In this document: piece by piece, positions 14,311 to 61,600 of the stretch
How the letters are laid out: the number at the start of each line of letters is the position of its first letter
Numbering within the stretch: the first letter of the stretch is position 1
NCBI RefSeq assembly: GCF_000143415.4
Contig: NW_003314305.1
Coordinates: 1,522,834 to 1,586,833, forward strand
Origin: Selaginella moellendorffii
Taxonomy: Eukaryota > Plantae > Lycopodiophyta
Length of the DNA: 64,000 bases
Direction: 5' to 3'
Position numbers and translations under genes: made by a program
The notes under the pieces: model-generated
Seen by the model: the letters and a program-made list of their open reading frames with translations, nothing else
The model's database searches: none
Told to the model about the DNA's origin: nothing

Positions 14311-15588
14311 TTATGTTCTCTTATATATGTTTTTAAATGTTTTTGTTGATATTTTTTTAGATTGAAATCTGTATTCTGGTGGTGAGATGATTGATGGATG
14401 TCTTGCTCCTAGGGGACCACGAGCCTTGCCAAGTACTTTGGAGGATTTTCCCCTTGAAGCTCCAAGGGTTCCCAGTGCTGCAGCTGGAGTTGGGTCCAGT
14501 ATAGTGGCATCTGGCAGCATCCGGACGACACCGTGGTACTGTTTGGGTGGTGACCAGTTTCTACCATGGTAGCGTTCCGTACTCCACGTCCAGTGCATGT
14601 TCCCCACCATATGAGCCCCCAGAGTGTCCAAGTAAGGGGTGAGCTGGAGCTCCTTGACCTCGGGCCACTCACTTATCTCGCTGTAGAGCTCCATGAACTC
14701 GTCATTCATGGCTGAAATCATGTCGCATGCTTCGAACATTGCTTCCTAGAAAGAACACCCTCTGTTCACGCAGATCACCCATGGCAGGCTGTGCTCGTAG
14801 CTCCCTTGCATGTATTCCATCCGGAACGATCCAATGTCGTTCGTCCAGCCCCCGAAGTCCATCGCACACATCTGCAGGTGCTGGAACTTGGGATTATTGA
14901 GCAGGCTGTCTGGAAGCTCCATGTTGAGGGCGTATTCGAGCAGCACCACCAGAGACGAAGCGGCAACCGAGGCCCTCCTTTGCTGAATTTATTCTTTCAA
15001 ACTTTGTACCGGTCTTTCTTTGTTCTTACCTCTACGTTGAAGTTGCTTCATGTTGGCCGCACACATCTGCTTTACTGTGTCCGCAAATCGTTCCTGCTGC
15101 TTCACCGTCATTCCCCTACGGAAACTCTTCCACAATTCTGCGAAGAAGAAACTGAACCTGGTTGCGTGGGAGTTAAGCAGCAAATCGTTCTCCTCAGAGG
15201 CCAAACTAGAGCAGCTGTTGCTGCTGGTCATGATTTTCATCAGCTTCGTGAAGAAGTCATGAGCCTGTTGGATCCTGCTGGATTCCATGCTGAACTGTGT
15301 GTTTGATGCGTCGTCGAGGCAGTTGTCAACAATTGAGTACCACGCCACGAAGTTACCAATGTCTGAGACGCGTTCCTTGAGTCCATATGGATTCATCACA
15401 CATGCCAGGAGAGCGTACTTCTCATTTACCAGCATCTGCTTCTGGAGCTTCGACTCTGGACGAGCACATTGAAGAGCCCAAGCCTTCACTGATTCTGCGA
15501 TTTTGTCGTAGGCCGGGTGGTTTTTGAGAGGAAAGGAACAACGCACCTTCGGAAGATAAAACTCCCTGATGGGCTGCCGATGAGCCAT
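14311..15588 (-). pseudogene. Microbial terpene synthase-like (MTPSL) gene with two nonsense codons
   Basis: One intronless frame from ATG 15588. It has DNCLDD (DDxxD-like), NDIGSFRME (NSE motif) and WTWSTERY (WxxxxxRY). In-frame stops: TAA at 14989-14991 and TAG at 14746-14748. Confidence 0.88.
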
Positions 15589-16410
15589 TTTGCAAAACAC
15601 AAATGTAAGAGAGAACAGAAGTGAAGAATGATAATTTCTAAGGACCTCTGCCTCCAACTTATATCCAATGTTAATCAGCAATGAGAATACTAACAAGTCG
15701 TTAGTATCCAAGATAATCAGACTTATTAATAACAACCATTCCAAGCATATGCAATTTCGACAAGAGACTGGAAGTCTTTGCCAACCTAACAGCAACAGAT
15801 GACTAGTTATCTTCCAAGCATATGTATCTCAAACAATACGTGAAAAACACGTTGCGACTGTTGACTCAACAACGCTCCATCCAGCCCGTCATGACCTCAA
15901 AGGACTCGTAACAAAATCTTCTCAAAGGATGACCTTGACTGCCGTTCGGTTTATGGACAAGCCAGCTCGGCAGTCCGGGCCATGAGTTTTCTTCAATCAT
16001 CGTTGCACGACGACAGACTGAGATCAATCCATGGGGTTCGAGAGTCATTATATTGGTTTCCTGGTAGATTCATGTCATGCTCACTCTAGAACATTATTTC
16101 TAAGTTATGTCCTTGTAGTCATAAAGTCTCAAAACGATGATTACTTATCTGGCTTTTGAGTTGTGCTCAAGTTTGTGTTAATTTAAGTTCTTGGGCTAGA
16201 TACAAGGTTAACTATGTTGCTTCTTTGGTTTTAACCAGAATTTATTTGAGTATCCAGGTCTGAAAGTGAAAGTAAGGCTAAACGTGAAACTCAATTTGTC
16301 CACCAGCATTTAAAACTCCCCAAACATGGTAAGAGGTTATGTTAACATATGATCAATCATTGGGGAATTTAAGTAGAGTAATTTGATACAAGTTCTAAGT
16401 TGATCTTCAT

Positions 16411-35742: not shown

Positions 35743-38532
35743 CTAGCGTCTGGAGCGCATGGAGATCGCAAGAACCTGTCTCAATGCCAATGCCACTTCC
35801 ACCATTGTTGGCCTCTCCTTGGCCTCCTTTGTCATGCACCACGCTCCAACTTCTGCCAGCTTTAGCACTGCTCTCTTGTCCGTGGCGTCGTTGCTACCAC
35901 ACCTCCTGTCAAGAACAAGGCCCAACATTTCCTCCTTTCCAGATTCAATCACCTCGCATGCCTGTCTTGCCTTGCTGCTCGATCTGTCCCCTATGACTAG
36001 CTCCATCACCAAGCCTCCGAATCTGTAAACTTCGTCCGCCTTGAGGCCGAAGTTGTGAGAGCCGACCCTCTTCACACAGCTCCTCCGCGAGCTTCCAAAG
36101 CCGGCAAGCTTTGCGTTCCAGGACTTGTCCAAGAGAATGTTCTCTGAGCTCACGTTGCCGTGGATGATGCTCGGCTCCACGTATGAATGGAGGAACTCGA
36201 GAGCGCTGGAAACCTGTACCGCGATTCTCAGTCTCGAGCTCCAAGCCAGTGTGCTAGCGTTAGAGAAGAGATGATCCGCTAGTGAACCGTTTGGGACATA
36301 TTCGAGAACGAGGAAGTTTTCCTTGCGATTGAAGCAGTAGCCCGTGACGCCAACGATGTTGAAATGGCTGGCGCTGGAGATCACTAGGAGCTCGTCGCGT
36401 GCCAGTTTCGTCTTCTTCACCACTACTTGCTGTTCATCAGGTAGTTTAGCTCTGTAAACACACGCTCTGCGTCCCCTGGATATCAAGTTGCTGGAGCTAA
36501 ACTTGTCGGTGGCTTCTCGCAAAACTTGTGGAGAGAAGACTTTAATGTTCTTTGGCAGCAACAATGGACGTTCCATCTCACGATCGTTGTCGTCGAAGAG
36601 CAAGAGCACACGCCGCATATACGTAAGAACGATCAATCCTGCAACGAGCATGCCTCCCAGTCCTCCACACACGGCTGCTATGATCACTGCTGGATCTTCC
36701 GGTGGCGAGAGTCCACCAGCAGGCTTTATCGTGTACTTCAGAGCCCAGCCCCGTCCATTCCCAGTTTTAGTTCGAAACTCGAGCAGCACTGGACCAGGAA
36801 AAGTTTCTCGAGGCAGCGAAGAGTATCTTCCGGTGTAGGCTCTCACTATGTTCGCTACGTCAGACTTGTCACCTCTGTAAACCAGAAGCTCGTCTTGGTT
36901 TTGAACTGTATCGAAACGGACGAAGTCGAGTTCCACGTTTGGGCCGTCAAGAAACCAAGCGCAAGTATGCTGTTCGAGATAAGTCGCGTTCTCGGGAGTT
37001 CCATCAGTTAAAACACCACTTTTTTCTGTCACTCTTGTTGTGCCGAAGCAAAATCCTGAAAGGAACAAAGTAAGTGAGCACTTCGGTGTAAGCAAGAAAG
37101 TCAGCTTACCAGCTTGATACGCGATGTCCCAGCCCATCTCGGTCAAGGTTGGGTTGTTTCCAGTTTTGAACTCGAGCAGAAACTCCGAAGTGTAGAGTTC
37201 CAGCTGGTGAGGTGAGCCAAGCCCGCTATACATTTTCTCCAAGCATGCATCCAAACGGTAGATATATATTGGCGCAAAGCACGAGTGCAAGTAGACATAG
37301 TCGACGTTTTTCACAATGGCCATGTAGTTTATCTTGACGCGTACCACAGCAGCCCCTGGCATGGTGACTCGCCATTCGCAATGCAAGCCGTGGCTGTAAG
37401 GTTGGAGTCCCACACTGTGGTTGACAATCAGCCCTTCACTTATAATCCCATGATAGTCATTTCTCTCGCTCAATCCCTTGCAATGTTCTGTCAAAGGTCC
37501 AAATGTTTAGAAGAAAGGCGAGAACGAGAGAGGCATACCGTATGAGTGAAGTGCACAAAGTTTCGTCTTGTCGCTCCAAATCTGTTGTACCATGTACCGG
37601 TAGCCATTTATCCCGCTTAAGTTCCAGCTGATTTTCCCGTCGTCAATCACCGGCTTTGCAGAAATTGATAAACCGGTGGGAGACGGACACAAGGTCGTGA
37701 CTGTGGAAGATAGACTGCTGTGCCAGCCATCGAAGTCAGTGTTTGTTGCCATGGACACAGTTTGTGCGAGCACAGAGCTGATCAGGGAATCCAACTGGCC
37801 TTTATCCTTCGCATTTGGTGGTGAAAGAAACTCGTGATAATAACTCCAGAGGTTGCAGTATTCCGCCCCCCCTGGCTCCCGGGACCATGCCAGGCTTAAC
37901 TCGGGACCAACTTCTTCAGCCTTGAAAAGTCTAAACCGCCTGCTGCAAAGAGATGTGCCGAAGTCTTCTGAAAAGGACACCTTCTCGCTAAAGAGAAGAT
38001 GGTACACCGCAGTCTCATCTTGAGGGAGCACTGAACTGCACAACGGAGGCGTTTGAGACGGCGAAGAAGAGACGTTGAAAGCCTGGAGCATAAGTGAAGT
38101 GAGAGCTTCTCTGCTTAAGTTTGACGCCGTAGAACTCGAGCACTCCACCGTGCCAAGCGACACATTACTGGAAACTGGCTGACCGTTCCCATCTGTGTAC
38201 TGCGTAGCAACCTTCCACCAGTTGAAAAGATCCGGCAGTCCATCACCACTTTCAACCGAGAGCGAGCGAACCGCATTTCGAAGAGCTTCCTTGGACTTGT
38301 CCTCCCACGGACCAAGCCAGATGAGATAGACCACTATAGGTTCCACGAGCAGTCTGCCTCCATGGTAATGGACTGCCGTTACATCTATGAGACTGAATGG
38401 TGGACTCGAACTCTTCGGAGTATCATCCGGCCCGTCGACGAGGAAACTCGTGCTAGAAAACTCTACCTTGCTAGAGCAGAGAGAAAGCAGCACCATGAAG
38501 CCGAGAAACAGACCAAGCCTGAGCAGCAGCAT
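35743..38532 (-). CDS. Receptor-like pseudokinase copy A: SP - EXORDIUM/Phi-1 - CUB - CUB - TM - dead kinase
   Basis: Exons 38532-37539, 37487-37110 and 37055-35743, with phase-1 GT-AG introns of 51 and 54 bp. Phi-1: YHGGRLLVEPIVVYLIW, WWKVATQY, PPN, NLSGINGYRYMVQQIW. CUB: C..GVLTDG..Y...CAWFL..VELDFVRFDT..QDELLVY.G..YTG..VLLEF..GWALKY. Kinase has HGN and GFG. Confidence 0.85.
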
Positions 38533-38734
38533 GACCCTGCTTCCGGAACTCGAGCAGAGAAAAGTGATCCAGTGATGTCCTGTACGCACTGTTGTTTTAT
38601 AAGCGCGGCATCGGGGACTCAGAAGAAAGCTCCAAGTGGAGAGATACCGGTACAAGAGGACAAACCGAAAGGAACGCCGCTTCAGGAGGCCCGACGACAG
38701 CTTCCCATTGTAGCTTGAGGTTGCTTTGCTGCTT

Positions 38735-41572
38735 CTAGTCTCTGCTTTTCCCAGGTGGCGGACGCTGTTTCTTCGATGCCGAGCGTAGAACCATTGCGGT
38801 AACTTGGCTTAACGTGGAAGAAACTTCAACCATGCTTGGTTGTCTCCTACTGTCGCTCATGCACCAGGCAGCGATCTCTCCCATCTTCGCAATCTGGCTT
38901 TCATTCTCGAGCCGCTTGTCCATGATAGTGTGTCCCATGCCTGTCTCTATCGCGGCCAAGGCTTCTCTCTTGTGTTTTCGATCGCTCGAAGCCTTTCCCG
39001 TCACCAGCTCGAGCACCAGGCTGCCAAAGCTGTACACGTCTTGTAGCTTCAGAGACGGTTTGATGGCAACGCTGCTGCTTTGAGCTCTGCCGAATCCACT
39101 CAGCTTTGCATTCCAGGAGCCATCGAGGAGAACGTTCTCGGCGCTGATGTTGAGGTGAACGACGTGGGGCTCGGCGTATGTGTGCAGGTACTCGACTGCT
39201 CTGGATATCTGGCAAGCGATTCTAAGCCTGTTCCCCCAGCTGATCGGAGGCAGTGTATCGTCGAAAAGTCGTCGAGACAAGCGGCCGAGATGCATGTAGT
39301 CAAAGACAAGGCACTTCTGCTCTGCGTCGGACGAGAAGCCGACCAGGTCGACGATGTTTGCACTGCGAATGCGCAACAAGATGTCAAGCTCAAGCTCGGA
39401 GACCTTCTTCTTTATGACAACAACACAACCGTCTTGCAGGGTACCACGGAAAACGTTTCCATCTGAGTCTGACACCACATTCGCCGGATAGAAATCCATG
39501 GTCGCCTCTCGGAGCTCTTCCAGCGAAAACTTTCTTCTTGTGTGGAGTCGCGGCTTTTCTTCACTTGGCTGGATCTTTGAGCGTCTGACCGGAAGGACCG
39601 AAAAGTTGCAGCAAAGAACCACAGCTCCAAGGAAGATCACACCCGGTACGAACACACCACATACAGCCCCCAGTGCAGTCACTGCCGCAGATCTAGCTGT
39701 ATATGACAAGTGCGTAGTAGTTTGTGGAGAATCCATCACGTAGTTTAGAGCCCAACCGTCGCCGTCTCCTGTTTGACTGGAGAATTCCAGTGTTATTGGA
39801 CCTTTGAATGCCTGACGTGGGAGCTCGCCTTTTCCGGAATACTCTGCAAGGACCTTGTGATGGTCACGGTGGTAGACTCGAATGACGTCGCTGCTTGCAA
39901 TGGTTTCCAGTCTGGTGAAGTAAAGCCGGACCTTACTGTTTTGCAGTGCATGGAAGTGCCACGAACAGTTTGAGCCCTTCATATACTTGACGCCTTTTGG
40001 AGAGCCATCGTTGATCGATCCTCTTGCCTGGCGTACATCAACACTGCGTTTACAAAAGCCTGCAAAATGGAAGTATTTGAATCGCTAAAAAGTTTAAACC
40101 ACGCTGACAAATCACCTGCTTTGTAGCTGATCATCCAACCCATTCTGTTGGGAGAAGCTTGTGATCCGCTGGTAAACTTGATGTGAAAACTTGCACCCTT
40201 TGCATCGACTAGCTTCTTTCCAGGTGAATAGCCTTTTAGCACGATCCTCTTGCAAATTCTGTGTCTGCACTCGTAAGAAATTTCCACTGTATCACCCGGG
40301 CCGAGGGCCAAATAGTTCAGGTGGATGCGTATGTGAACTGCGTTGGAGACACTCACGGTCCACTGACAATGAAGGTTCGAATTGTAAGGCTGCAAGCCAA
40401 CCTTCGCGCCAGGAGTTGAATCCACAATAAGACTAACCATAATAGTTCCCGTGACTGTCGTTAGCTTCCGTTTGCCTTGGCATGATCCTGCAAAAAAGAA
40501 AGAAAAAGGGAGAAAATTAAACGACAGCTTGTAGGGGTTACGTACTGAGAGGTTTGAGAGCACAGTTCCGTTGATCCTGGTTCCAAAGCTGCTGAACGAG
40601 GTAGCGCGTTCCATTCCTTCCATAGACATTCCAGCTTATCATCTTCTCGCGGTCATGAATTACGGGCATGACGGAGTCCTCCGAGCCGGTTGGAGAAGGA
40701 CATTGTTGAGCCACCGAAGTTTGTGAGTTGCTTGACGCCACCCATCCTTTGAAGTCCCAGTTGGTAGCCATGTCGGCAGTTTGTGCCAGAACTTTGCTGA
40801 TTAGTGAGTCGAGACCGCCACTCTTTCCATTCGGAGGCGTGTAAGACTCTCCAAACCTTGTCACCAGGTTGCAGTATTCCTTGTGAAAAGGCACTCTCAC
40901 CCAAGCCAAGCTGATCTTTGGCCCGGATTCGTCGACTCGGAACAAACTGGCGCGGCCGGCACAGTTCGTGAAAGGGAGAAAATCTTTACCGGTACGCAGA
41001 AATGTAACGTGCTTGCTGAAGAGGACGTGATATACTGCAGTGTTTTCTGCCCGAAACACCTTAGTGCAGTTTGCCTGAATTGGAGAGGAGCGGTTGAACG
41101 CCTGTGCAAAAGTTCCCAGCAGCTTTGGCATTTCGAGCTCCCGTAAACTGAGTGAGCATTCGCTGCCGAGCGAAATACTGCTCGAGACAGGCCGAGAGGT
41201 AGCGTCAGTGTACTGAGTGGCAACCTTCCACCATTTCGAGAGTGTCGGATACCCTGTATTGTTTCTGTCAAGCTTGCCGGGTGACTCGTCATTAAGCGAA
41301 AGAATTGCATAACGAACTGCTTGCTTGGCGTGCTTAGTCCAGTTACCGATAAAGAAGAAGTAGACAGTGATGGGCTCTACAAGTAAACGACCACCCTTGT
41401 ATTCAAAGGAAGACGTCTCTGCCGGGGACTGGACATGTCGGGCAAGAATGCGGAAAGCATAAGTCTCGTTGTAGATATTCCTGTCAGCCGCTGGGAAATC
41501 CTCATAAAAACCCCAAGCCGATCTTGTAATGACTGGTAATAACAGCCACAGAACATGAAAAGCAGTGCCCAT
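38735..41572 (-). CDS. Receptor-like pseudokinase copy B (same architecture)
   Basis: Exons 41572-40546, 40487-40116 and 40059-38735 splice in frame. Phi-1: YKGGRLLVEPITVYFF..WWKVATQY..PPNG. Two CUB-like units and a TM. Kinase has HLNISAENVLLD and AKLSGFG. Confidence 0.85.
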
Positions 41573-41777
41573 AGTCCTGGAGAAACAAAACACCAAGAAC
41601 TCACATGAGAATTCAGAACAAAAGAAACTTTAAACAGTGCAAGCTACCTCGTAATAATTTGCTCGACCGGTGGAAGCACCAAGGCCGAAAAGCATAATCG
41701 ACAGACTGGCAGCGACTTTGCAAGATCGTCCAAAACAATAGCTTTAATCCTTGAGTGAGCTTTGTCCTCGAGTAGAT

Positions 41778-44469
41778 TCAGCCTGGACGCTTACTATGCC
41801 GCTTGGATTGACCAAAGAAAATAGTTTCCACCTGTGCCAACACCGCGGCCACCTCCATCATGTTCGGTCTGTCCTCCGGCTTGTCCTTCATACACCAGGC
41901 ACCTATCTCCGCCATTTTCAGCAAAGCTCGCGCACTTCTTTCTCGTTCGCATGGCACCTCCAACCTCCTGTCCAAAATTTCGTAGCCGGACCCTGTGTCG
42001 ATAACATGAACAGCCCAGCGGGCAACGACTGTTGGCTGGTCCTCTTCTGCGTTCAAAGCACTCTGTCCCATGAGCAGCTCCAAGATAAAAACTCCCACCC
42101 TGTAAACGTCTTCGGCTTTCAGCTTGAGTTCCTGGCTCCTGGAACGTACACTCAAAGCGCTGCCGAATCCCGCGAGCTTGGCATTCCAGGAACCGTCCAG
42201 GTAGACGTTGATGGAGCTCACTGACCGGTGAACCACGCAAGGCTCCGCAAACGTATGCAAGTATCCCAGAGCTCTCGCGACTTGCGTAGCAACTTTCACC
42301 CTGCGTTCCCACGAAAGAGCCGAGCACTTGTCGTCGTCAAAGAGATGGCTGAAGACGGAGCTGTGGCACATGTCTTTGAAAATGAGGAAGCTTTCGCTGA
42401 TGTCGTAGCAGACACCCAAGACGGAGGCCACGTTGGAATGCTTGATCCTTGACAAAAGCTCGAATTCCTTCTCGCACGAACGCATGGACCGTTGTATCAG
42501 AACGAGCTGCTGGTTGGGCAAAACTCCTCTGAACATATCCGGTGCAACCAGCTTTTCTTTGCAGAAGTTGCTGGTCGCAGCATCCAGCTCTGCTCTTGAA
42601 AACTGTCTGCTAGTCAGGCTGAAAACAGTGTTGTACTTGCACGAGCGCAATATCAACCAGACCCCGCCAATCAAACACAGCATTCCCGAGAGCGCTCCAA
42701 GTATTACGGCCAGTAAGTTTTTCCTGGAAGATGGACCGTGTGAACCTGAATCCGGGTGCTCCATCTGGAAGTTTGCAGCCCAGCCATCACCGTCGTCAGT
42801 TTCCGTTGAAAACACCAACAGTAGAGGTCCAACGTAAGTCCGGTTTGGAAGAACGGAATAACGTCCCGAAAAGACCTCCAAAATAGAGTCGCTGCGCTTA
42901 GCGTCTCCTTGGTAAACAGTAAGCAAGTCTTTCCCTTGCACTGTATCGAAACGAGTAAACTGAAGATGGACATTGCTGCCTGGTTTTGCCTTGAAGAGCC
43001 AACTACACTCACGCATACCCAGGTACTGCGCTCCATCAGGACTTCCATCTGATAAGAAACCAAAACGATCGGTAGTGGTAATGGTCTCGAAGCAGAATCC
43101 TGAACAAATCGTATTGATGAGTTTCTGAAGAAATAGCAAGAAATAAGCTTACCAGCTCTATACTCTAATTCCCAGCCCATGGAGAGAGGTGTTTGCTTGA
43201 CACTCGTCTTAAACTCAAGCTGCAGATTCGAGTGAACAACATCCGGAAGGCTTACTTGAGTACTAGTCCCAGCCATAGATTTTATCATGTCACAATCAAC
43301 CTCTCTGCCGAGTATCAAGCTCGATATAGGACACACGTATAAGTTCAGCTTGTCGTTAACGCCTAAAGCCATGAAGTTGACAGTCATACGAATGACTTTA
43401 GAGTGCGGAATAGAGAGGAACCACATACAATCAAGACCTGGTGGATATGGCTGCAAACCAACGTTATGGTTTATAATCAAGCCCTGGCTTATCAGGCCTC
43501 TTGGCTTGTTCAGGACTGCCGGCTCATGACAATAATCTGCAAAGAAAGATTAGTTATACAAGATCAGTTCTAACACCTAAACAAGACAGTACCTATGATC
43601 TGAAGAGCACAATTGTTGTTTTTCTGGCTCCACAGTTGCTGCACGATATACCGCGAGCCGTTTATGCCTCGCAAGTTCCAGCTGACGCCGTCTTCCTCTA
43701 TCACGGGACCATTTTTATCAGCCCACCCCGTTGGCGATGGACATTTGGAGCTGACCGTATCCCCAGAATCGTCGTTCCAGCCATCGGACTCTGTGTTTGT
43801 AGCCCTCTCAGCGCTGCTGGCTAAAACTGCGCTAATTAGCGAGTCCAAGCTCGTGTCTCCATTTGGGGGCCCAGCATACCCTCCAAAACGGCGCCAGAAG
43901 TTGCAATACTCGTCCGGTCGAGGCTCTCTTGTGTATAGATAAGTTCTGTTTCCACCAGCATCTATATACCGTCCTGAACACTCGTAGACACCTGTGCTGT
44001 CCAGCTCCTTGCTAATGACTGCGTGATAGATCCCATTTGCGTCTTCCGGAAACACGGAGAAGCAGTCCTTGGAGACGGCAGATTTCATCAACTGTATGGA
44101 GGCGTTGCCGACACTAACAGAACACTCGATTCTCGACAAGGAAATGTTACCGGAAACTGGCCTCTGACTGGAGTCGTTGTACTGTGTCACAATTCTCCAC
44201 CACTTCGACAGTGTTGGGAATTCAGAAGGCCCGTCGTCGGACAGAGATATGACGGCGCTGCGAACGGCTTCTTTGGAGTGCTCCGACCAGGGGCCAACCC
44301 AAGCAACATAGATCGTGATAGGATCAACCATAAGCCTTCCCCCTTGGTATGCAAAACCGTTGCTACCAATAACAGATCGAATGGTGCTGCCAGAAGCCAT
44401 CGATAAATTAGCAAGTCCCACCCATAGCACTGAAAGCACAAGAGCTTCAAGCGGCATCTTAGCCATCAT
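41778..44469 (-). CDS. Receptor-like pseudokinase copy C (same architecture)
   Basis: Exons 44469-43593, 43536-43153 and 43099-41778. Phi-1: YQGGRLMVDPITIYVAW..PPNGDTSLDSLI. Two CUB-like units and a TM. Kinase has LVLIQR (no beta-3 Lys), HRSVSSINVYLD and AKLAGFG. Confidence 0.85.
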
Positions 44470-44760
44470 ACCTCTTCGAGTTTCAAAAGCCTCCCTTCCT
44501 AGTCCTCATGTAAAAGCCATGCCGTGTTACGATCAACACGATGGGCTCGCAGCAGTGTCCGAGCTCACCAATGTATAAATGTTTGTCACTGCAGCTTCAT
44601 CTGCAAAATCTAGGTGTTAACAAGGTAGAAGACAAGTTATGACGGGACAAACAGCCACGCAGAAAACAGAATGCAAACTTGTCGCATGCACAGAACGTCG
44701 ATGAAACAAACCTTCAGACCTTTCAAGCATGTGATTTCCTTAGGACACAAGCAAGGCAAA

Positions 44761-46016
44761 TTATCCAGTCAAAACGTTGGCCATACCAGTAAGAGAAATA
44801 AGTAAAGGATAGTTGTGGTCTGCATCATAATTTAACCATTGCGTATTTTCGGCTTGCAAAAACTCCTTGTGCAGCTTGTAAATATCAGCATCATATACTT
44901 CCTTGACGGCAACAGCCAGACCAGCAGATTTTGCAATCTCAATAAATTTGAAAAGGCTTCCACCTCTGCAAGGACAGAAAAGTAGAGCCTCGGAAGTCAT
45001 TGTACGTGTCAAAATCGATTTGATAGTATGCACCAGATCGAGATGAAAATCTTTGAAGTAAGTGCTAAGCCACAGAAAAAAAGCATCCATCAAATCCCAT
45101 CTGTCATGAGGAACGTCTCTTACCAGTCAGCAGCAATAATAAAATCAAATTCAGAGTCCAGAGGTACTGGCTCTTTGCACCAGTACAAAACCTCTGAGCT
45201 GACTTTAGTCTTCCCAAACAGCTCCGCATTCAGTCTGCAATTTTTCTGGATATCTGCCAGGACGGAAGTCAAGGAGCCAAAAGAGAGGCGGCAAAAATAT
45301 TATAGGATACAATTCACAACCTTCGGGTTGCCATCCGTGATTAAAACTTCGGCAGCATCGGTACAAGCTGCCAATGCTAGTCCCGCTAATCCATATCCAG
45401 CACCAAGTTCTATAATCCTCTTGTTCCTGTCAATCCAAACGCTACCCACAGATTGGAATTGGATGGAAAAAGAAATGGAAGAGCGAGATATCACGTACCT
45501 AAACATTTCCGGTCGTGAAACGCAATAGGAAGCAAGAATCTCTTCAGCTGGCCACAAACCTATGAAAAGCTTGTGATCTTCACTTAAGAAAAAGAATAGA
45601 AATCTCCACTTACAAATAACACCAGTGTTGTCAATGCCGAGCTCTCTACAGCTCGAATGATCGCTAAGCTTAAACTGGCCGCTGCGTGATTGCCTACAGG
45701 AAGAAAATTCACCAATGATAACAAAGAAAGCGATAAACCTCATCAGCAATGCAGTCGTCCGCTCATCCGGGAGCGTGTACTCCCACAGAATACCATCGAT
45801 CTCCTCGTTATCTTCCACGCAGCGGCTCGCGATCAGGCCAAAGCTCCCGGACGGGACTCTGGATACTCTCGCAGCCTCCTCGTCAATCTCATCTGCGGCA
45901 TTGCAAGTCTGGACAATGTGGGAGCCGATCCAGCTCAAGAACATACCAGATTTCGAGCGGAGCAGCGATCGCTTGAGAAGGCGCCATCGCAGAGCCGCGG
46001 GAGACGAAGCTGCCAT
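44761..46016 (-). CDS. CAMKMT: Calmodulin-lysine N-methyltransferase, multi-exon
   Basis: AALRWRLLKRSLL; IDNTGVIC-LWPAEEILA; KRIIELGAGYGLAGLALA; VLITDGN; FDFIIAAD; NYDADHNYPLLI. Confidence 0.9.
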
Positions 46017-46039
46017 TGTAAAACCCTAACGCTATTTGG

Positions 46040-47951
46040 TCAAATTAGAATGACATTACATGGATTTCTAGTAGTAGTTTCACTAGCAGTGGTTTTACTA
46101 TAAGAGCGCCGGATCAAGCACGCTCCACAGAGCAAACACGAGAGTCCCATCAAGCACGACGCTCCAGAGATAATTGCGACCACGTTTCTCCTGGAAGATC
46201 GACGCTGCGACTCCGATTCTGGATGATCCATCTCAAAGTTCGCGGCCCAGCCATCGCCATCACCGGTTTGGGTCGTGAAAACCAGCAACACTGGCCCGCT
46301 ATACGTCCGGTTTGGAAGAATGGAGTAGCGTCCCGAGAAGCTTTCCAAGATGGAGCCCCGGAGCTTGTCGTTTCCTTGATAGACAGTGAGGACGTCTCGG
46401 CCTTGGATCGTGTCGAAACGAGTGACCTTTAGCCGGACTTCGGTGCCTTTTTTCGCGTTTAAGACCCACCTACACTCGCGCAAGCCCAAGTACTTCGATC
46501 CCTCGGGACTTCCATCCGATATAGAGCCCGATCGGGCGGAGGCCACAGTGGTTCCATTGCAGAATCCTGGAGGACGAAAAAAACAGAGCCTTTTTTCTTC
46601 TTCCAGAAGCAAAACTAGAAGATGATGTTCTTACCAGCTTTGTATTCGATCTCCCATCCCAGAGAACCAGCCGCTTGTTCGTCCGCGCTTGTTTTAAACT
46701 CGAGTATCAAGTTTGTGGGAACGAAGTCCGGAAGGACGATCCGAGAGCTAGCACCAGTCATGGATCTTAGCACCTCGCAACTATCAACTCGGCCGGAAGC
46801 ACGCGGCAATATGGGACACTCGTAGAAGTTGAGCTTGTCTGTGATGCTTAGAACCATGAAGTTCACGGTCACACGGAAGATCTTCGCTGTTGGAACGTCG
46901 AGGAGCCACAGGCAATTCCTTGCAGGAGGATATGGTTGCAAGCCAACGCTGTGGTTGACGATCAAGCCCTCGCTTATCAGGCCTCTTGGCTTGTCAACCG
47001 GTTTGATGGAGTGGCATTTTGCTGTACGAACAAGCAAACAACGTGAAATCATTCATGCATGCACACTCATGGTCACGACTTACCAATGATCTGGAGAGCA
47101 CAATTGCTGTTCTCTAGGCTCCAAAGTTGCTGGATGAGGAACCGTGAGCCATTTATCCCGACCAAGTTCCAGCTCACGCCATTCTCCTCGATCACGGGAC
47201 TGTTTCCATCGCTGAGTCCCGTTGGAGACGGACACAAGGAGCTGATAGTTCCTCCGGAATCGTCCTTCCAGCCGATCGTGTCGATGTTTGTAGCTCTCTC
47301 GGCGCTGCTGGCTAGAACTCTGCTGATCAACGAGTCCAAACCTGTGTCACCATTCGGTGCCTCCGCAAGTCCTCCAAACCGACGCCATAAGTTACAGTAC
47401 TCGTCTTCTCTCGGCTGCCGAGCAAAGAGATAAGTTCTTCCGCCACCATTCCCTTCAAATCTCCCAAAGCATTTGTAGACTCCCGTGCTGTCCAGATCGC
47501 TGCCGACGACCGCGTGATATATCCCATTTGGGTCTTCCGGAAGAACATCGCTGCATTGCTTCGAGACGGTGGATTCTATCAGCTCGACTGAAGCGTTGGC
47601 GATACTGACATAGCACTCGGTTGTCGACAAGGAGATCTTGCTAGAAACTGGCCTTTGGTTGGAGTCATTGTACTGCGTCGCGATTTTCCACCACCCGGAC
47701 AAGGTCGGGAGCTCTGAAGGTCTGTGATCATCCGAGGAAGAAAGAGATCGGATGGCGTTGCGAAGAGCTTCCTTGGAGTTCTCCGACCAGGGGCCAACCC
47801 AAGTAACGTAGATCGTGATCGGATCAACCATGAGCCTTCCTCCATGATATGTTAGATTAGCATTGTCAGATCGAATTGAGCTGCCAAAAGCAATGGTATC
47901 AGTCGATAGAAGCACGAGTTCAAGTGTAAGGAATAGGGACTGGAGCAACAT
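46040..47951 (-). CDS. Copy D: SP - EXORDIUM/Phi-1 - CUB - CUB - TM with no kinase (receptor-like protein or truncated duplicate)
   Basis: Exons 47951-47084, 47021-46635 and 46566-46040. Closest to copy C. Homology stops just after the TM, followed by a ~20-aa unrelated tail. Confidence 0.8.
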
Positions 47952-48479: not shown

Positions 48480-50200
48480 GACAAGCAATTCTTTGCCATC
48501 TCAGGAGGCACTCGATTCGCATGCGGGCTTGCGTATGGTTCTCACTTCGCAATATGCTGAGTTCCAGATCTTTTAAAGAATGTAGGCTATGTAAGCTTGA
48601 GCTCCGGTGCCTATCATGTCTGTGCGATTAGTAAAAACGACAATGGGGTTGAGTGCTGGGGGGCGATTGACGAGTTTCCAAGCTCTGAGCTAGAGTTTTT
48701 CTCGGTTTCATCCGGCCTCTTGTGTCTCTCAGGCAGGAGAGGTACATTGCTGGGGTGCTGTAGATCAAGCAACCATTCAATCAACCTCACAAGTTCGCGT
48801 CGGTGTCTGTGGGATCTCGTACGATATGCGGGTTGCCAAGCTTTGATTCGGCTTCTTCCATTGCTCCTCCAGGTTACAGGTTTTCTTACGTGACTGTACC
48901 ATGTGTTGGTATTCGAGCGGACAATTACGGGGTGGTATGCTGGGGTCAGGATGGTCTAGCGCTCCTTCCGAAACTCAGTTTTCAGTGATTTCAGCAGGGC
49001 TGTTTGCTGGGGGAACTCGGCTGACTAGTGAACCATTGCTAGACTTTGGTAGTGCTAGAATGTGCACAAGCGAGTGTGGGAAGAACCAGTTTAAGCTGAA
49101 TTCTACGTTGAAGGTGTTGTCTCCATCGTTTTCAGACAAAGTTTGCTTGGAGTGTTCCACATGTGGGACTGGAAGTGTTCTAGACTCCAAGTGCGCAGGC
49201 TCGCCTCTTTTCCTAAAATATAAGAACTCCCAGGAGGAAGTTGTGAGGAAGAAGAAAACAATCACCAAGGTGGCAGTATATGTAACTGTTGCTATGTTCG
49301 TCTTTGGTGTCGTTCTCTTAGAAATTTGGTCTATGTTTGGCAAAGAAAGCCCAGCAGTGCAATGGAGATTAAAGCTGAAGTTAGTAGCAAGCATTTCAAT
49401 GTCTTCAAACCAGCTCGAAGCAGCCACCAATAACTATAGCGAAGAGGTTCCTTTGGGACAGGATTCCTTGAAAATGGGCAGGAAGTTTCTATTTCTAAAA
49501 GGTAATTCACTATTCCTGTTTTTCCTCTTAAGATACTTGTAAACTCTTTGAAGAAACGTTTGTTTCCAGAAATCACCACTCTTGTCTAGTATAATTGGTG
49601 GAATTTTGCATTGAGGAAGTCTTTGAGGACGCTTTGTGACAATATGCTCATGTCCAACTGTCCGGCACCTTTCCAGTTATGGGACCAGGATGATAGCTGC
49701 ACAGGTTGCGTGAGGCCTGCACAAGTAAGCATGGCCCAAGATCATTCATATGGACGTGAAATCAGCCTACATCTTCCTTAATAACGAATGGAATGCTCAT
49801 GTGTCAAACTTTGGACTATCGTTAGACGAACCTCAAGGCAAATCGGGTTACTTGGATCCCGAGTGCAATGGCTACTCCGTCAAACTGAGCATAAAGAGCG
49901 ACGCGACAGCTTTGGAGTGGTTCTTCTGGAGCTACTTTCTGGCAAGGCAATAGAAAGTTTTATGCTGATCTTCAAAGATGGGCGATTGAGCTGGTCGAAC
50001 AAGACGAGTGGAACTCGGTGCTGGATCCAAGACTTTCACTTCCTTTGGAACCGGAGCCTTTGTATCGGGCAGTAAAGTTGGCACTGGAGTGCGCGAAGAT
50101 CAATGGAAAGGAGAGGCCATGCATGACAAGAGAGTGCAAAGTCTCTCGAGGATATCTTAGAATCCATGGTAATCACCACTGAGGTTCCACGCTCTAGAAC
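48480..50200 (+). pseudogene. CRINKLY4-related receptor kinase pseudogene
   Basis: Crinkly/RCC1-like repeats (AISGGTRFACGL, LSSGAYHVCAI..VECWG, SVGSRTICGL, CVGIRADNYGVVCWG), a Cys-rich segment and a TM. Kinase remnants IIHMDVKS, AHVSNFGLS and GKSGYLDPE. Many frameshifts and stops. Confidence 0.8.
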
Positions 50201-55707: not shown

Positions 55708-56501
55708 ATGGCAGATCAGCAATCTCCTCCTTTGACTCTAGAGCAGCAGTTGGTCCAATTGCTTGATGCTATGCGCTTGCAATTGAACAACCAAACTCAA
55801 TTGATAGCGGCATTCACGGCACGTGGTTCAACTCCTCTTGCTCTTGGTGCCAATCTTCGTGTTCGGCCGGAGTTCTTTCGTGGGAATCCTGGGGATGATG
55901 TGTACCATTGGTTCGATCACTTCACGGTGATTGCCACATATCATTCTTGGGATGATGCTCGACATTTGCGTGAGTTTCCCACGTGTCTCCAAGGGACGGC
56001 GTTGCAGTGGTACAATGGATTGAGTGCGGCCACTCGTGGGGATTGGAGTCTTCTTCCGGACGTCTTCAAACGCGCCTTCGGACATGCCGACGATTGTGAC
56101 GATTCCTTCCAACAATTGCATCGTCTTAGCCAAGGGCCATCTGAGTCAGTGATGCAATTTGGCGTTCGTTTCCGAAGTCTTTTGCTTCATGCAGAGCCTA
56201 ATATGTTGGAGTGGATCAAGCTAGGAATGTTGTGGCCAGCACTTCGTCAAGATCTTGTCGGCCTTGTGCATGCACTTGCTCCTGCCACCCTTGACGATGC
56301 TCTTCGCTTGGCACAACGTTATGAAACATTGCCTCTTCCACTTCTTGCTGCACGTCCTTCCGCTCCACTTCCTATGAGTGATGGTCCTGTTCCAATGGAG
56401 GTTGATGCTGCTGCTACTCGAGTCCAAGGACAAGGGAGAGGACGTGGTCGTGGCCGTGATGTTTGTTGCTGGGCGTGTGATGAAGTTGGTCATACTTATC
56501 G
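55708..56501 (+). CDS. Gypsy gag, truncated in the zinc knuckle
   Basis: PEFFRG..W..HF, ALQWY, LSQGPSESVMQF, GPVPMEVD; CWACDEVGH knuckle lacks its final Cys. Confidence 0.88.
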
Positions 56502-57068
56502 TGTGAGACACAAAATCCCTAGGCCCCAAAGTGGAGCCGGAAGGGCGCCACGTGGTAGTGGCCGAAGCGAGAGCCAAACGAGCGTAACACGTTTGGACCA
56601 AAAGCTCCGACTTGAAAAGTCAAGAGCGGGAGTGGAACTCCCAACGAAGTGCTCGAGGAACGAGCACGAAGCGAGCAAAAAGCGAGGCTCCAAAAAGGGA
56701 CCCGAGATGGACCCGAGATGGAGTCCGAGATGGAGTCTGAGATGGAGTCCGAGGTGGACCCGAGATGGAGTCCGAGATGGAGTCCGAGATGGAGTCTGAG
56801 ATGGAGTCCGAGATGGAGTCCGAGGTGGACCCGAGATGGACCCGAAATGGAGTCCGAGATGGAGTCCGAGGTGGACCCGAGATGGACCCGAGATGGAGTC
56901 CGAGATGGAGTCCGAGATGGAGTCCGAGGTGGACCCGAGATGGACCCGAAATGGAGTCCGAGATGGAGTCCGAGGTGGACCTGAGATGGACCTGAAATGG
57001 AGTCCGAGATGGAGTCCGAGATGGACCCGAGATGGAGTCCGAGATGGACCCGAGATGGAGTCTGAAGT

Positions 57069-57103
<35 letters not shown>

Positions 57104-58601
57104 TCGGGACCGAGAACGAGACCGAGCCCGAGCCCGAGACCGAGCCCGAGCCCGAGTTTGAGTCTGAGTCCGAGTCCGAGTCCGAGGCCGAGTCCGAGTT
57201 CGAGTCTGAGAGGGTGAAAGCCCAAAGTGTTCGTCTCCCAGACCCTGGGGGGTTTGGTGAGCTCCAAAAGTATAGTAGGGGGAGGACTGCAGTGGAGCCA
57301 GTTTGGCCAGGAAAGGCCAGTTTGGCCCAGGAAGGCTGGACCCAGTGTTGGGTTATGAGCTGCCCACTGGGAAGTCCAAGACTAGAGTGAACACAAACCG
57401 ACAAACGGGGTAGCTTGGTGAAGTGTTCAAGAGTCGGCTCTAGTTCCCCCGAGAGATCGACTGGCCGATGCTCCCAGTCCAAGTGTGGGTGGCACTACCT
57501 ACTTGGATACCTGTCGTGGCTCAACGGAACCTCGCTCTAAGCCCATGGCTAGAGCACCTAAAGGCAGAAGGCGGGGAGAATACCCATGAGGCCCACGTAG
57601 GGCCACAGTGTTCCGAAATGGTGTCCCAAAGTCCCAGACTGTGGAAAGGAAGAGGGGTAGCCCTCTGGTGGGGTGACCAAGGACACAGTCACACAATGAG
57701 GAAGTCCTAGAGGATAGTGGGACTTAGTGGTCGGGCCGGTGGGCCTTGATCCAGTGGCAGTGTTGGCGAACATAGCCAAGGACAGAAAGGGACTTGGTGG
57801 GGACCGGAACAGAGATATTGGGGAAGGCTATTCCCCATGTCTGTAGGCATCCTAAGGATGTTAAGGAGTGGATCTGGGATGATCCCTCATGGACGGATGA
57901 CCCAGTCTTTGAGAGACGGGATGGGAATGTAGGTGGCGTTGGACCACCAGTGTAACCAAGGTAATTGGGCATGGCCTTAGCGTAACGGGCCGATACGTCG
58001 GTGGTACCTTGGGGTGTCGATAATGGGATCGGACACATGGAGCACTTGGACCAAGTGCTAAGGTTGAGTGGCATGGATGCCATTCTCGGGGCTAGCAAGC
58101 CCTAAGTCCTGAGTTGGACTTATGGAGGTTGCGAATGAGACTCCTCCAAGTGGTTAGAGGTGTGGTTAAGTGACTAAAGTAGAATGGAAAAATTAGTCGC
58201 TTACATCGGTGTTGTCGGCGCTTTCCGGATTGGCGACCTCCATTTCCTGGGTGGAGACCTTGGCCTCAGCAACGTCCCGTTGGTGCTGCTGCGGTGGAAG
58301 GTTTGGACACCGAGGTGCATCTAAGAAACAAGGAGTCGCACGAGTAATGGAGGGACCTTGCGCGAATAAGTTAGTGACCCCTCCATCTTTCTTTCGGGAG
58401 TATTATCAAGGGGTTCACTCGGCACTAGTTCATCCAGTGTTTACTTTCCAAGCTCGTTTTATAACAAGAGGTCTCCTATTATTCTCTCCGTGTTGGTTGA
58501 TACAGGTTCGAGTTTATCTTCTATTGCTTGACCTATTGTCGTCTACACTTGCGTCGTACGGCGGATCCAGTTTTCATTCTTTATGGCAACGGCCATACAC
58601 A
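56502..58601. mobile_element. Nested ~2.1-kb insert (TGTG...CACA ends, possibly a foreign solo LTR) replacing the gag end and protease start
   Basis: Gag breaks at TGTGAGACAC and protease homology resumes after GGCCATACACA. No TSD is visible. Confidence 0.6.
56695..57210. repeat. 11/12-bp minisatellite (GGACCCGAGAT / GGAGTCCGAGAT) grading into hexamers
   Basis: Directly visible; it generates low-complexity ORFs on both strands. Confidence 0.95.
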
Positions 58602-61600
58602 TGTATGTGCACGAGATGAGGCAGACCTAGTTGTGCGTGTGGGCGATCTCGAGCTTGAGTTGCAGTCGTTGTGGGTGGTGCCGAGTCAAGCTTTTGACCT
58701 CATTCTTGGTATGGATTGGTTGCAGCACAATCATGCCAAGTGTGACTTTGAGGCTTCTCCCCCTTGTCTCATACTTCCTTATGTTTCATCCATACCTCTC
58801 ACTTCTATCCCTCTTCGTCCCTCTACTTCTACCTCTATTTCAATTACTTTTGTTTCCCCACTATTTCCTCCTATGTTTCCATCTTGTTTTGCTCTTCCCT
58901 TTTTCGATCCCTCCGACGATCTTTGTGTTGTAGCGGTTGACTAGCTTATGAAGGAGTATTCTGATCTCTTTGAATTTGACCTATCGTCTAGGGCCAAGAT
59001 TGCCACACGTCATTCGATTCCAACTGGGGATGCTCGTCCAATCAAAGTTCCTGTTCGTCGTCGGTCACCCAAGGAGATCAAGATTTTACGTGCAAACGTC
59101 AAGGAGATGTTGGAGAAGGGTGTTATTCGGAAGTCGCGGAGTCCTTGGGCATGTGAACCTCATCTTGTGATGAAGCCTGATGGGAGTATTTGTTTCTGCA
59201 TTGACTATCGTCCGTTAAATGAAGTGACGATCCCGGATGTGTACCCTCTTCCTCACACTACTGATCTCTTGGATCGTCTCGGGCGAAGTCGTTGGTTCAC
59301 CAAGCTAGATCTTGCTTCTGGGTACTGGCAAGTACCAATGGCCGCAAAAAATATTCCTAAGACTGCTTTTCATACACCGTTTGGTTTGTACGAGTTCTTG
59401 GTGATGCCGTTTGGTTTGAACAACGCTGCAGCAACTTTCCAGCGGATGATGGACGAGGTTCTTTGTGATATGCCAGAAATGACTACCGACTTCATTGATG
59501 ATGTCTTGATTCACTCGGAGGGGACGTGGGAGGAGCACGTTCATGATGTTTGTAAAGTGTTGGATCGGCTACGCGATGTTGGTTTAAGGCTGAAGCGGTC
59601 GAAGTGTGTGTTTAGGTCCAAGGATACAACTTATCTTGGGTACTGTATTTCTCGTGAGGGTTTGCAAGTTGATTCTGACAAGCTTGTGGCTGTTCTAAAG
59701 TTCCCTACTCCGAAATGTGTGAATGATGTGCAGCGCTTCTTGGGCAAGGTGCAGTATCTCGGTCGTTTTGTGGATCATCTTTCTGATCGCACTGCACCAT
59801 TGCGAGCGTTGCTGAAGTCATCAACATCATCTTTCATCTGGTCTCCGGATTGTGAGCGGGCATTCGGGGATCTCAAAGAGCTATTAACGACTCCTCCGGT
59901 TTTGGCATATCCTGACTACACTCGACCTTTTATTTTGCGCGTGGATGCTTCTGACATTGGTCTTGGAGGTGTGTTGATGCAAGAGAGTTCGAGTGTGCCT
60001 GGTCAACGCCATCCTATTGCGTATATAAGCCGTACATTACAACCAGTGGAGATGAATTACTCCACAACGGAGAAGGAGTGTTTAGCAGCAATTTGGGGTT
60101 TCGAGAAACTTCATGCATATCTACATGGTTCTCGAACGTTACTTGAAGGTGACCATGCTGCTGTTACTTCATTATTGAAGCGGAAGAACCTGGTTGGTCG
60201 TACTGCTCGGTGGGCTTTGAAGCTTCAGATATATGATTTTGATGTTGTTCATCGCCCAGGGAGTTCTATGGCTGATATTGATGCCCTTTCTCGAGCTCCT
60301 CTTCCTTCTTCACTCACTTCTCATGTTTCTGACGAACCTGTTGTTCCAGCATCTGTGGATTTTCTAGACGAGGATTCTGTGCCGTCAGCGGTTGCTGTCC
60401 TTGATGTTCAGTGTCCACAAGGCGCAGAGTAAAATCTACCTTCTCTTGATGATGTTTGTGAGGCTCAAAAGATTGAGCCGTCGATTCAAAGGCTTCGAGA
60501 TGGGTTTGAGAATCCTGCATCACTTGCTGATGACTTGCCTTTCCGGCATTTACATTCTCAATATCGCCTTGAAGATGGCCTTCTTTATTTTGTGGGGACG
60601 GATCCTGAGGATCATTTACAGCAGTTGTGCCTTTTGTCTTTATTTCGCGGTTTCTCCATGCCTACCATGATTCTTTTGTTCTAGGTGGGCATATGGGACA
60701 CCGTCGTGTTCTAGGTGGGCATATGGGACACCATCGTGTAACCGAGAAGTTGCGGAGGTCTTTTTACTGGCCGGAGATGCAACGTGATGTTATCCAGTAT
60801 GTGCGTAGCTGCGTTTGGTGCTAAGCTCGTAATACTCCCCCTCGTGCTACGGAAGGACGGTTGGAGTCAATTGTGGTTTCCCGTCCATTTGAGTTGGTGA
60901 TGTTTGATCTTATGGGACCTTTTCCATGGTCAACTGCTGGCAATGAATATGTTATTATTGCTTCTGACTACTTGACTCGTTGGGTGGAAGTTGGTGCTCT
61001 TGCTAGCGCCTCTGCAACTGTTGTTAGCTATTTCCTCCTCAATCGAGTGGTGTTCCAGCAATCTTGTCCAGAGTGGATTCTTTCTGATAATGGTCCCGCA
61101 TTTATGGCTGAGGTATTTCATGTTTTGACATCTCGGTTGGGGATACGCCACACTTTCACGAGTGCTTATCATCCACAATCAAACGGTCTGGTGGAGCGGC
61201 TCGTTCGGACATTTAAAGGGATGATTGCGAAGTATGTGAACTTTCAGCATTCAGATTGGGATGGTTATTTGCCGTCTCTTCGGTATGCATATGTCACAGG
61301 GGTGTAAAGTTCTGTTGGTGGTTCACCATATAAACTCTTATATGGTCATGATCCAATATTACCAACGGAGCTGGGTTTACCTTCGCGATTGCTGTGAGCT
61401 GCCGATGCTAGGTCGTGGGATCAGTATTTGACGAGCATTCTTCCATTTGTCTAAGCAAAGTCTGTCGAACACTTAGGCCGCGTACAAGTAAAACAACAAT
61501 GGCGCTACAACTCTCATCATTGTCCACCTGCGGAGTACAAAGTGGATGATTTGGTGTTAGTCCGTTTTCCCCATCTTACGGTACGTGGTTTATCTAAGGG

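Follow-up and report, generated by a model that had tools for sequence, protein, structure and literature searches.

Four minus-strand genes (A-D) in a 64-kb stretch of Selaginella moellendorffii DNA, referred to here as the window, very probably represent an old, vertically inherited family of vascular-plant receptors that has been duplicated in tandem on the Selaginella branch and that couples an extracellular region, through a transmembrane (TM) helix, to a pseudokinase with a putative scaffold role. The underlying architecture, in which an EXORDIUM-like Phi_1 domain precedes two CUBs, a TM helix and a pseudokinase, had been proposed in an earlier note on this DNA and is real, with Pfam, AlphaFold2 (AF2) and Foldseek in agreement; in genes A and B it is spliced into a single mRNA.

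All four genes consist of three exons and contain two phase 1 GT-AG introns of 51-68 nt at domain boundaries, an organization that the earlier note had described with exact coordinates for the first introns. Gene A (38532-35743 (-), 894 aa) comprises exon 1 at 38532-37539, exon 2 at 37487-37110 and exon 3 at 37055-35743, separated by introns at 37488-37538 and 37056-37109. The other genes are B (41572-38735 (-), 907 aa; introns 40488-40545 and 40060-40115), C (44469-41778 (-), 860 aa; introns 43537-43592 and 43100-43152) and D (47951-46040 (-), 593 aa; Phi_1-CUB-CUB-TM; introns 47022-47083 and 46567-46634). The reading frame is kept at every junction in each of the four copies, and A, B and C splice into open frames as had been anticipated. 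The product of A is 98% identical to that of RefSeq LOC9661189, located on the other haplotype scaffold, the product of B is 100% identical to that of LOC112349981, and residues 47-860 of C are 100% identical to LOC9648196; the RefSeq models for B and C are named "uncharacterized protein". The paralogues have diverged to 37-42% identity (62% for C and D), and the spacers between the cluster genes are about 200 nt long.

The description of the locus as a tandem array of four full receptors stands as far as the number of genes is concerned but not for gene D, which ends 18 residues beyond the TM helix and lacks the kinase. Nor is the array uninterrupted: the first exon of a Methyltransf_16-like gene that is unrelated to the receptor family (46016-45300 (-)) lies between D and C, starts 24 nt past the stop codon of D and marks the site of the missing kinase part. 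A tblastn search of the region downstream of D (44470-46040) detected no kinase remnant, and Rfam and tRNA scans of the 64-kb window returned nothing.

Stranded RNA-seq reads from two raw RNA runs, together with two contig sets, span both introns of A and both introns of B, including the first introns at 37488-37538 and 40488-40545, where the earlier note had suggested looking for junction reads. The first mates map to the plus strand and thus report RNA of the minus strand. The gaps in individual raw reads lie at GT-AG sites and measure exactly 51 and 54 nt in A, and 58 and 56 nt in B, each run contributing 3-5 independent starts, and the splice joints of A in reads and contigs are 37487/37539 and 37054/37109. 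Gene B additionally carries a 71-nt GT-AG intron in its 5' leader (41576-41646 (-)), the joint of which, 41575/41647, was recovered in RNA sets X18, X19, X1 and X2; this intron ends 3 nt ahead of the ATG, and the upstream leader exon adjoins the 3' end of C. Reads that span the introns between the coding exons of A and B show that the fusion is transcribed. The junction-read evidence concerns these two genes. The possibility that the fusion is an artefact of gene modelling, in which a stand-alone secreted EXO gene and its neighbour, a distinct CUB-kinase gene, never share an mRNA, deserves attention given that stand-alone EXO proteins are the norm and that, with spacers of about 200 nt and RNA coverage unbroken through them, assembled contigs alone could mislead. 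However, single raw reads that skip the exact introns refute this explanation for A and B, and with the frame kept at all junctions in the four copies and identical junctions in Pistacia, its overall probability is close to nil.

The products of all four first exons match the Phi_1 profile (PF04674) with scores of 79.5-89.1 bits against a cutoff of 25, and profile positions 2-274 of 276 are covered in one stretch by A, B and C, and in two stretches by D. In A, the domain (81 bits) extends from 38370 to 37539 (-), approximately residues 55-333, and is preceded by a signal-peptide-like hydrophobic leader at 38532-38476 (-), signal peptides having been judged by hydropathy only. The AF2 model of the domain (pLDDT 77.5, pTM 0.85) superimposes on the EXORDIUM-like 3 cluster of the Atlas with a TM score of 0.81 and an rmsd of 3.2 over 274 residues, a comparison between predictions on both sides. 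Thus, the assignment of exon 1 to a signal peptide and a Phi_1/EXORDIUM-like domain is borne out by Pfam and by the structure model, with the leader resting on hydropathy. The cluster proteins share with EXORDIUM, EXORDIUM-like and PHI-1 proteins the full Phi_1 profile, the predicted fold and an extracellular location after the signal-peptide-like leader. In contrast to the EXO/EXL proteins, which stand alone as secreted proteins of about 300 aa, they carry the domain fused to two CUBs, a TM helix and a (pseudo)kinase. Separately, the predicted Phi_1 structure appears to resemble metzincin protease domains weakly. The zinc-binding motif of metzincins, HExxHxxGxxH, was sought in 24 Phi_1 domains and in gene models A-D, none of which contains HExxH, and an hhalign comparison of the Phi_1 profile with a bacterial M43 domain and with a reprolysin domain gave a probability of 0.3%, which is not significant.

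Exon 2 of A (37487-37110 (-)), a symmetric phase 1-1 exon, encodes CUB1, and CUB2 occupies the start of exon 3 (37055-36731 (-)). With the third exons of A, B and C submitted to Pfam, CUB2 scored 37.9, 22.0 and 34.2 bits, respectively, against the CUB cutoff (PF00431) of 21.4; CUB1 exceeded this cutoff in B (22.9 bits) and remained below it in A, C and D. The AF2 model of the CUB1-CUB2 pair (pLDDT 84) retrieved 190 PDB matches at E<=1e-3 in Foldseek, the best of which are tandem-CUB proteins aligned over about 250 columns, namely PCPE-1 (E 2e-14), neuropilin and cubilin, so the proposed CUB assignments are confirmed in part by Pfam and, for the pair, by the match of the model to solved tandem CUBs. 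A sequence search of the PDB with the ectodomain produced no match. Neuropilin a1a2, PCPE-1 CUB1CUB2, cubilin and CDCP1 likewise present a tandem pair of CUB beta-sandwiches in an extracellular ligand-binding region, and such animal receptors and enhancers are the best structural matches of the plant pair (Foldseek E 2e-14 to 3e-12), whereas sequence identity to the animal CUB proteins is only 16-18% and the partner domains differ. Furthermore, the plant CUB2 keeps one of the two usual disulfides, and the acidic Ca2+ triad (Glu/Asp/Asp) looks incomplete in an alignment judged by eye only, with an invariant central Asp, a frequent last Asp and a seemingly replaced Glu.

The nearest sequence relatives of the CUB pair are multi-CUB secreted proteases of the Bacteroidota type that are sorted by T9SS, with about 30% identity over both CUBs; phmmer with both CUBs matched bacterial CUB arrays over query residues 24-240, and the signatures 'DGS...Y...C.W' and 'GW.A.Y' are shared. 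Several of these relatives join a metzincin domain (M43, reprolysin) to the CUBs, but they are secreted enzymes in which numerous CUB repeats are combined with a Por_Secre_tail, and lack Phi_1, a TM helix and a kinase. It is conceivable, albeit improbable, that the ectodomain is a domesticated protease module, with Phi_1 as a dead metzincin-like domain and a Bacteroidota-type CUB pair, derived from a secreted 'metzincin + CUB' ancestor that may have entered by horizontal transfer ahead of the divergence of vascular plants. If this were the case, EXO proteins would be pseudoproteases that bind wall peptides or glycoproteins, which would hint at the EXO ligand.

The topology comprises one hydrophobic N-terminal leader and one internal TM segment, which in A is a single helix at 36690-36610 (-) followed by RR. 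The kinase-like domain of A (36507-35773 (-)) is related to receptor-like kinases (RLKs) and carries HGN in the catalytic loop and GFG at the DFG position (36162-36094). Pfam recognizes Pkinase/PK_Tyr_Ser-Thr in exon 3 of A, B and C, with only the N-terminal half of the profile matched; hence, the reading of exon 3 as CUB2, TM and an RLK/Pelle-type kinase holds for these three genes and fails for D, which has no kinase. None of the 21 family members compared retains HRD, which reads HGN, HLN or HRS, or DFG, which reads GFG; all of them lack the catalytic Asp, the Lys of the catalytic loop and the Mg-binding Asp. Only a short stretch separates GFG from subdomain IX, and the APE region is shortened too; the motif 'H-G/x-N ... 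N-A-K-L-x-G-F-G' is kept in all 21 sequences. By its sequence, the intracellular domain is a pseudokinase: having lost the HRD and DFG aspartates and part of the activation segment, it should be unable to phosphorylate. The best kinase matches outside the family are of plant RLK/RLCK types (PBL7-like, Extensin-family, WAK, SD-2b and LRR, a few of which include a U-box); a single Phytophthora kinase appears at a much lower rank. Kinases classed as dead have in some cases later proved active, and the angiosperm members retain the beta3 lysine (VAVK) and part of the Gly-rich loop (G-E-G-P-S-A), so that nucleotide binding is conceivable; nevertheless, an unconventional catalytic activity is very unlikely in view of the replacement of all three residues in 21 of 21 sequences, the shortened activation segment and APE region, and the restriction of the Pfam match to the N-terminal half of the profile.

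Exhaustive phmmer and profile searches identified full-length proteins with the same domain order and the same HGN/GFG lesions, at 30-32% identity, in at least 20 angiosperms, including Amborella, Asimina and Dioscorea; all of them carry Phi_1, CUB and Pkinase. In Pistacia vera, the positions and phases of both introns are identical to those of the Selaginella genes. In the phylogenetic tree, Selaginella forms one side of a split supported by 100/100, and the branching among angiosperms is similar to that of the species tree. Conservation is about equal over the four folded domains (56-65% among angiosperms, 28-34% between Selaginella and angiosperms). The family age derived from this sampling of Selaginella and angiosperms is a lower bound. 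These results overturn the description of the family in the earlier note as lineage-specific. A recently exon-shuffled receptor limited to Selaginella or lycophytes might be suspected from the two phase 1 introns at domain borders, a classic exon-shuffling signature, and from word-based searches seeded solely with Selaginella sequences, which for the ectodomain returned only Selaginella proteins. Such a restricted origin is nonetheless extremely unlikely, considering the spread of the architecture across angiosperms, the shared kinase lesions, the intron positions and phases common to Pistacia, the congruence of the tree with vertical descent and the fact that the domain combination was counted in a 528-species survey. 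Because Pistacia shares both introns in position and phase, exon shuffling, if it occurred, must be older than the split between lycophytes and euphyllophytes.

In the ESM Atlas, an angiosperm protein used as the query led to a family cluster of 66 members; the Selaginella protein, submitted to the feature search, yielded no usable match. Most of the matches come from woody angiosperms, and no protein from Arabidopsis, grasses, legumes or Solanaceae was among the protein matches found, which does not prove absence. Colocasia and Paspalum proteins, considered as monocot members because they scored above generic RLKs, were rejected, their similarity being confined to the kinase with no ectodomain match. 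As for selection on the Selaginella copies, which had been suggested earlier, purifying selection is evident for the C-D pair (dN/dS 0.15-0.20), but comparisons among A, B and C are unusable, with dS saturated or undefined. The conservation of D without a kinase shows that the ectodomain can be useful alone.

According to the model that we favor, an ancestral gene was duplicated in tandem in Selaginella, giving rise to four diverged paralogues, of which D lost the kinase. The products are type-I membrane proteins; we infer that their EXO and CUB domains recognize a ligand from the apoplast or the cell wall, and the pseudokinase might signal through an active co-receptor kinase, for which it would be a scaffold or an allosteric partner, by analogy with STRUBBELIG, CORYNE and BIR2. 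Like these RLK/Pelle pseudokinases, the cluster proteins are single-pass and have lost catalytic residues with conservation of the fold; unlike them, they have an ectodomain of Phi_1 and two CUBs, rather than LRRs or none, and a shortened activation segment. The kinase-less D could function as a receptor-like protein, in the role of either a decoy or a co-receptor. Alternatively, the proteins could be membrane-tethered, EXO-like apoplastic or cell-wall factors in which the dead kinase merely provides for anchoring, trafficking or turnover. This would fit the apparent catalytic death of the kinase, the retention of an intact, selected ectodomain and TM helix in D, and the reported action of stand-alone EXO in the apoplast on cell expansion (PMC2661892). 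The pseudokinase, however, has been conserved as much as the ectodomain for more than 400 My and contains invariant non-catalytic motifs, which argues for a specific cytoplasmic interaction and not for a passive anchor, and makes the tethered factor an unlikely alternative to the scaffold receptor.

The claim that the receptor family is new does not hold: RefSeq models exist, and 'CUB/Phi_1' is listed among frequent ectodomain combinations in a survey of RLKs from 528 plant species (bioRxiv 10.1101/2023.12.21.572927, a 2023 preprint). This multi-ECD class corresponds to the plant RLK domain combination described here, but the survey only counts it and covers neither gene structure and pseudokinase status nor phylogeny, expression and the Selaginella cluster. 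No functional description of a Phi_1/EXORDIUM-CUB kinase was found in the literature, where only the survey preprint surfaced, and a 2026 paper on EXO/EXL (PMC13103426) does not mention the fusion. Given that the architecture is already present in public annotation and in one survey, the value of the finding is moderate.

Cell expansion that depends on brassinosteroid and carbon requires EXORDIUM proteins. The family described here is a conserved natural fusion of the EXO domain to a putative membrane-anchored signalling scaffold, an arrangement that speaks for EXO domains binding ligands or partners at the cell surface. The apparent lack of matches in Arabidopsis, grasses, legumes and Solanaceae, together with the prevalence of woody species, may be the reason why genetic studies have not come across the family. 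It opens a way into EXO function through pull-downs, chimeric receptors and screens for partner kinases.

Four neighbouring minus-strand genes of the Phi_1/EXORDIUM-CUB-CUB-TM family, designated here A (38532-35743), B (41572-38735), C (44469-41778) and D (47951-46040), each comprise three exons that splice into open reading frames of 894, 907, 860 and 593 aa, respectively. Both introns of each gene, identified by direct reading of the junctions and by script, are GT-AG, phase-1 and 51-68 nt long. The three-exon layout with two phase-1 introns that an earlier note proposed for these four same-strand genes is thus borne out by the junctions and spliced reading frames, and its first-intron intervals (37488-37538, 40488-40545, 43537-43592 and 47022-47083) match exactly in every gene. 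The best database match of the exon 2-3 reading frame of A is the RefSeq "uncharacterized protein LOC9661189" of Selaginella moellendorffii (P0001, 894 aa; Pfam annotation precomputed as Phi_1, CUB and Pkinase), which is 98% identical to A, is located on another scaffold and presumably represents the second haplotype of A. Identity is 100% between B and LOC112349981 (P0122) and between residues 47-860 of C and LOC9648196 (P0121).

Evidence of transcription over A and B (35743-41700) comes from three studies, which supplied two contig sets and two stranded runs of raw RNA-seq reads. Single reads skip 51 and 54 nt in A and 58 and 56 nt in B, precisely at the predicted sites of both introns, with at most five independent read starts per run for each joint, and first mates map to the plus strand, in agreement with minus-strand RNA. 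In A and B, therefore, the Phi_1-encoding exon 1 is not transcribed separately, being joined to the CUB and kinase exons. The 5' leader of B contains a further GT-AG intron of 71 nt (41576-41646) that ends 3 nt short of the ATG; the leader exon upstream of it adjoins the 3' end of C, and an RNA contig of 5101 nt extends from B into C. Coverage is unbroken over the ~200-nt spacers between A and B (38533-38734) and between B and C (41573-41777), which could reflect either C-to-B-to-A read-through or overlapping UTRs. At the 3' end of A (35743-36339), oppositely oriented reads, whose first mate lies on the minus strand, point to an antisense or convergent plus-strand transcript. Compared with the window sequence, the RNA reads and contigs carry many single-position differences between 35789 and 41433 and a TTC insertion after 41433, which would fit a second haplotype or a different accession.

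Each of the four exon 1 products matches the entire Phi_1 profile, with 79-89 bits against a Pfam cutoff of 25, and the Phi_1 model (pLDDT 77.5, pTM 0.85) aligns with the Atlas cluster "EXORDIUM-like 3" at a TM score of 0.81. The Pfam CUB profile hits the exon 3 products of A, B and C; among the exon 2 products, that of B has a match. Because CUB1, the exon 2 product, falls under the Pfam threshold in A, C and D, the CUB1-CUB2 region was modelled from a 21-sequence family alignment (pLDDT 84). This predicted model has 190 PDB matches in Foldseek at E<=1e-3, the best being the tandem-CUB structures of PCPE-1 CUB1CUB2 (2e-14), neuropilin a1a2, cubilin and MASP/C1r/C1s. Hydropathy places one internal TM segment after CUB2 in every copy, preceding the kinase where one is present. 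A and C carry a 19-residue hydrophobic N-terminal leader exceeding the cutoff; the leaders of B and D are below it and were judged by eye.

In A, B and C, only the N-terminal half of the Pfam kinase profiles is matched. The catalytic loop reads HGN (A), HLN (B) or HRS (C) instead of HRD, Ser replaces the catalytic-loop Lys and GFG replaces DFG, and only ~25 residues, lacking an APE motif, separate GFG from subdomain IX; the label "pseudokinase" used in the earlier note is therefore correct. The array of four kinase receptors that it described holds for A-C and fails for D, which has no kinase. The D stop codon lies 18 residues past the TM helix, tblastn found no kinase remnant in 44470-46040, and a Methyltransf_16-like (lysine methyltransferase) gene on the same strand (45300-46016, minus) starts at 46016, 24 nt past that stop. 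This gene interrupts the array between D and C and occupies the place where the kinase part of the D exon is expected. The locus suggests that a rearrangement removed the D kinase. Since its ectodomain is 62% identical to that of C, with a C-D dN/dS of 0.15-0.20 at dS 1.1-1.6 (dS is saturated in the A/B/C pairs), D appears to be a receptor-like protein that is maintained without a kinase, not a decaying copy. Another receptor-like gene (48597-49950, plus) shows reading frames with a "C.AI...G.V.CWG"-type repeat and a TM-like segment; tblastn detects a kinase-like stretch at 49675-49949, and the two ORF pieces compared with Pfam have no match. The window also contains a Terpene_syn_C_2 (microbial-type terpene synthase-like) fragment (14989-15795, minus), a 708-aa PPR protein (17871-19997, minus) and a retrotransposon piece with Retrotrans_gag, RVT_1 and RT_RNaseH (55708-60432, plus).

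A word-based search from the Selaginella sequences returned only Selaginella proteins; exhaustive phmmer with the CUB pair reached a Liquidambar formosana protein of 871 aa, aligned at the equivalent position, that has Phi_1, two CUBs and Pkinase. A profile built from this protein and three Selaginella proteins recovered full-length members with all three Pfam families in the early-branching angiosperm Amborella, Asimina (magnoliid), Dioscorea (monocot) and the eudicots Nyssa, Xanthoceras, Prunus, Acer, Tetracentron, Dipteronia, Camellia and Ziziphus, further eudicot members in Trema, Ilex, Pistacia, Hevea, Rhamnella, Actinidia, Quillaja and Punica, and fragments in additional species. The ESM Atlas holds a Streptophyta cluster of 66 members, 100% with Phi_1 and Pkinase. 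The 21 aligned sequences all retain the HGN-type loop, "NAKLxGFG" and a short activation segment, and conservation is about even across all four folded domains. The Pistacia vera gene has the same three exons, with both introns in phase 1 and at residues homologous to those in Selaginella ("CALKPS|E.C" and "AG|.C"). The maximum-likelihood tree separates the five Selaginella sequences from the others by a 100/100 branch, and its angiosperm portion is similar to the species tree. Given this angiosperm range, the shared introns and the tree, the family is no younger than the vascular plants and has been inherited vertically, and the proposal of a lineage-specific receptor was wrong: the same architecture and lesions occur in angiosperms, and the same intron sites in Pistacia. 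In the angiosperms seen it mostly occurs as a single copy, and in Selaginella it has expanded in tandem; exon shuffling, if it built the gene, predates the lycophyte/euphyllophyte split.

The family is neither lineage-specific nor unrecorded, its members being named in databases "hypothetical protein", "Phosphate-induced protein", "Wall-associated receptor kinase-like" or "receptor-like protein kinase 7"; the new-receptor interpretation is partly supported, in that the receptor pseudokinase family is real, expressed and conserved, and functionally unstudied, the literature searched containing no functional study of it. Its members combine an extracellular Phi_1-CUB-CUB region, one TM helix and a conserved, catalytically disabled kinase fold. 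Analogy with plant receptor pseudokinases, and with ligand binding by CUB domains in animals, suggests that the ectodomain would bind an apoplastic or wall-derived ligand and that the pseudokinase would pass the signal on as a scaffold or allosteric regulator of an active partner kinase; D, having no kinase, may be a co-receptor or a decoy. The main alternative, an EXO-like wall factor tethered to the membrane with the kinase as a mere anchor, is disfavoured by the conservation of the pseudokinase, which is as strong as that of the ectodomain.

By sequence, the nearest relatives of the plant CUB pair (A, 36731-37487; proteins P0123-P0270) are bacterial multi-CUB proteins, not animal CUB proteins. 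Among 61 scanned proteins, none has a typical animal partner domain, 31 have a T9SS sorting domain, and further ones carry C10, M43, M4, S8 or reprolysin protease domains; "DGS" and "GW.A.Y" signatures are common to the plant and bacterial CUBs. This proximity to T9SS-sorted multi-CUB proteases of Bacteroidota type is a possible hint on the origin of the plant CUB domains.
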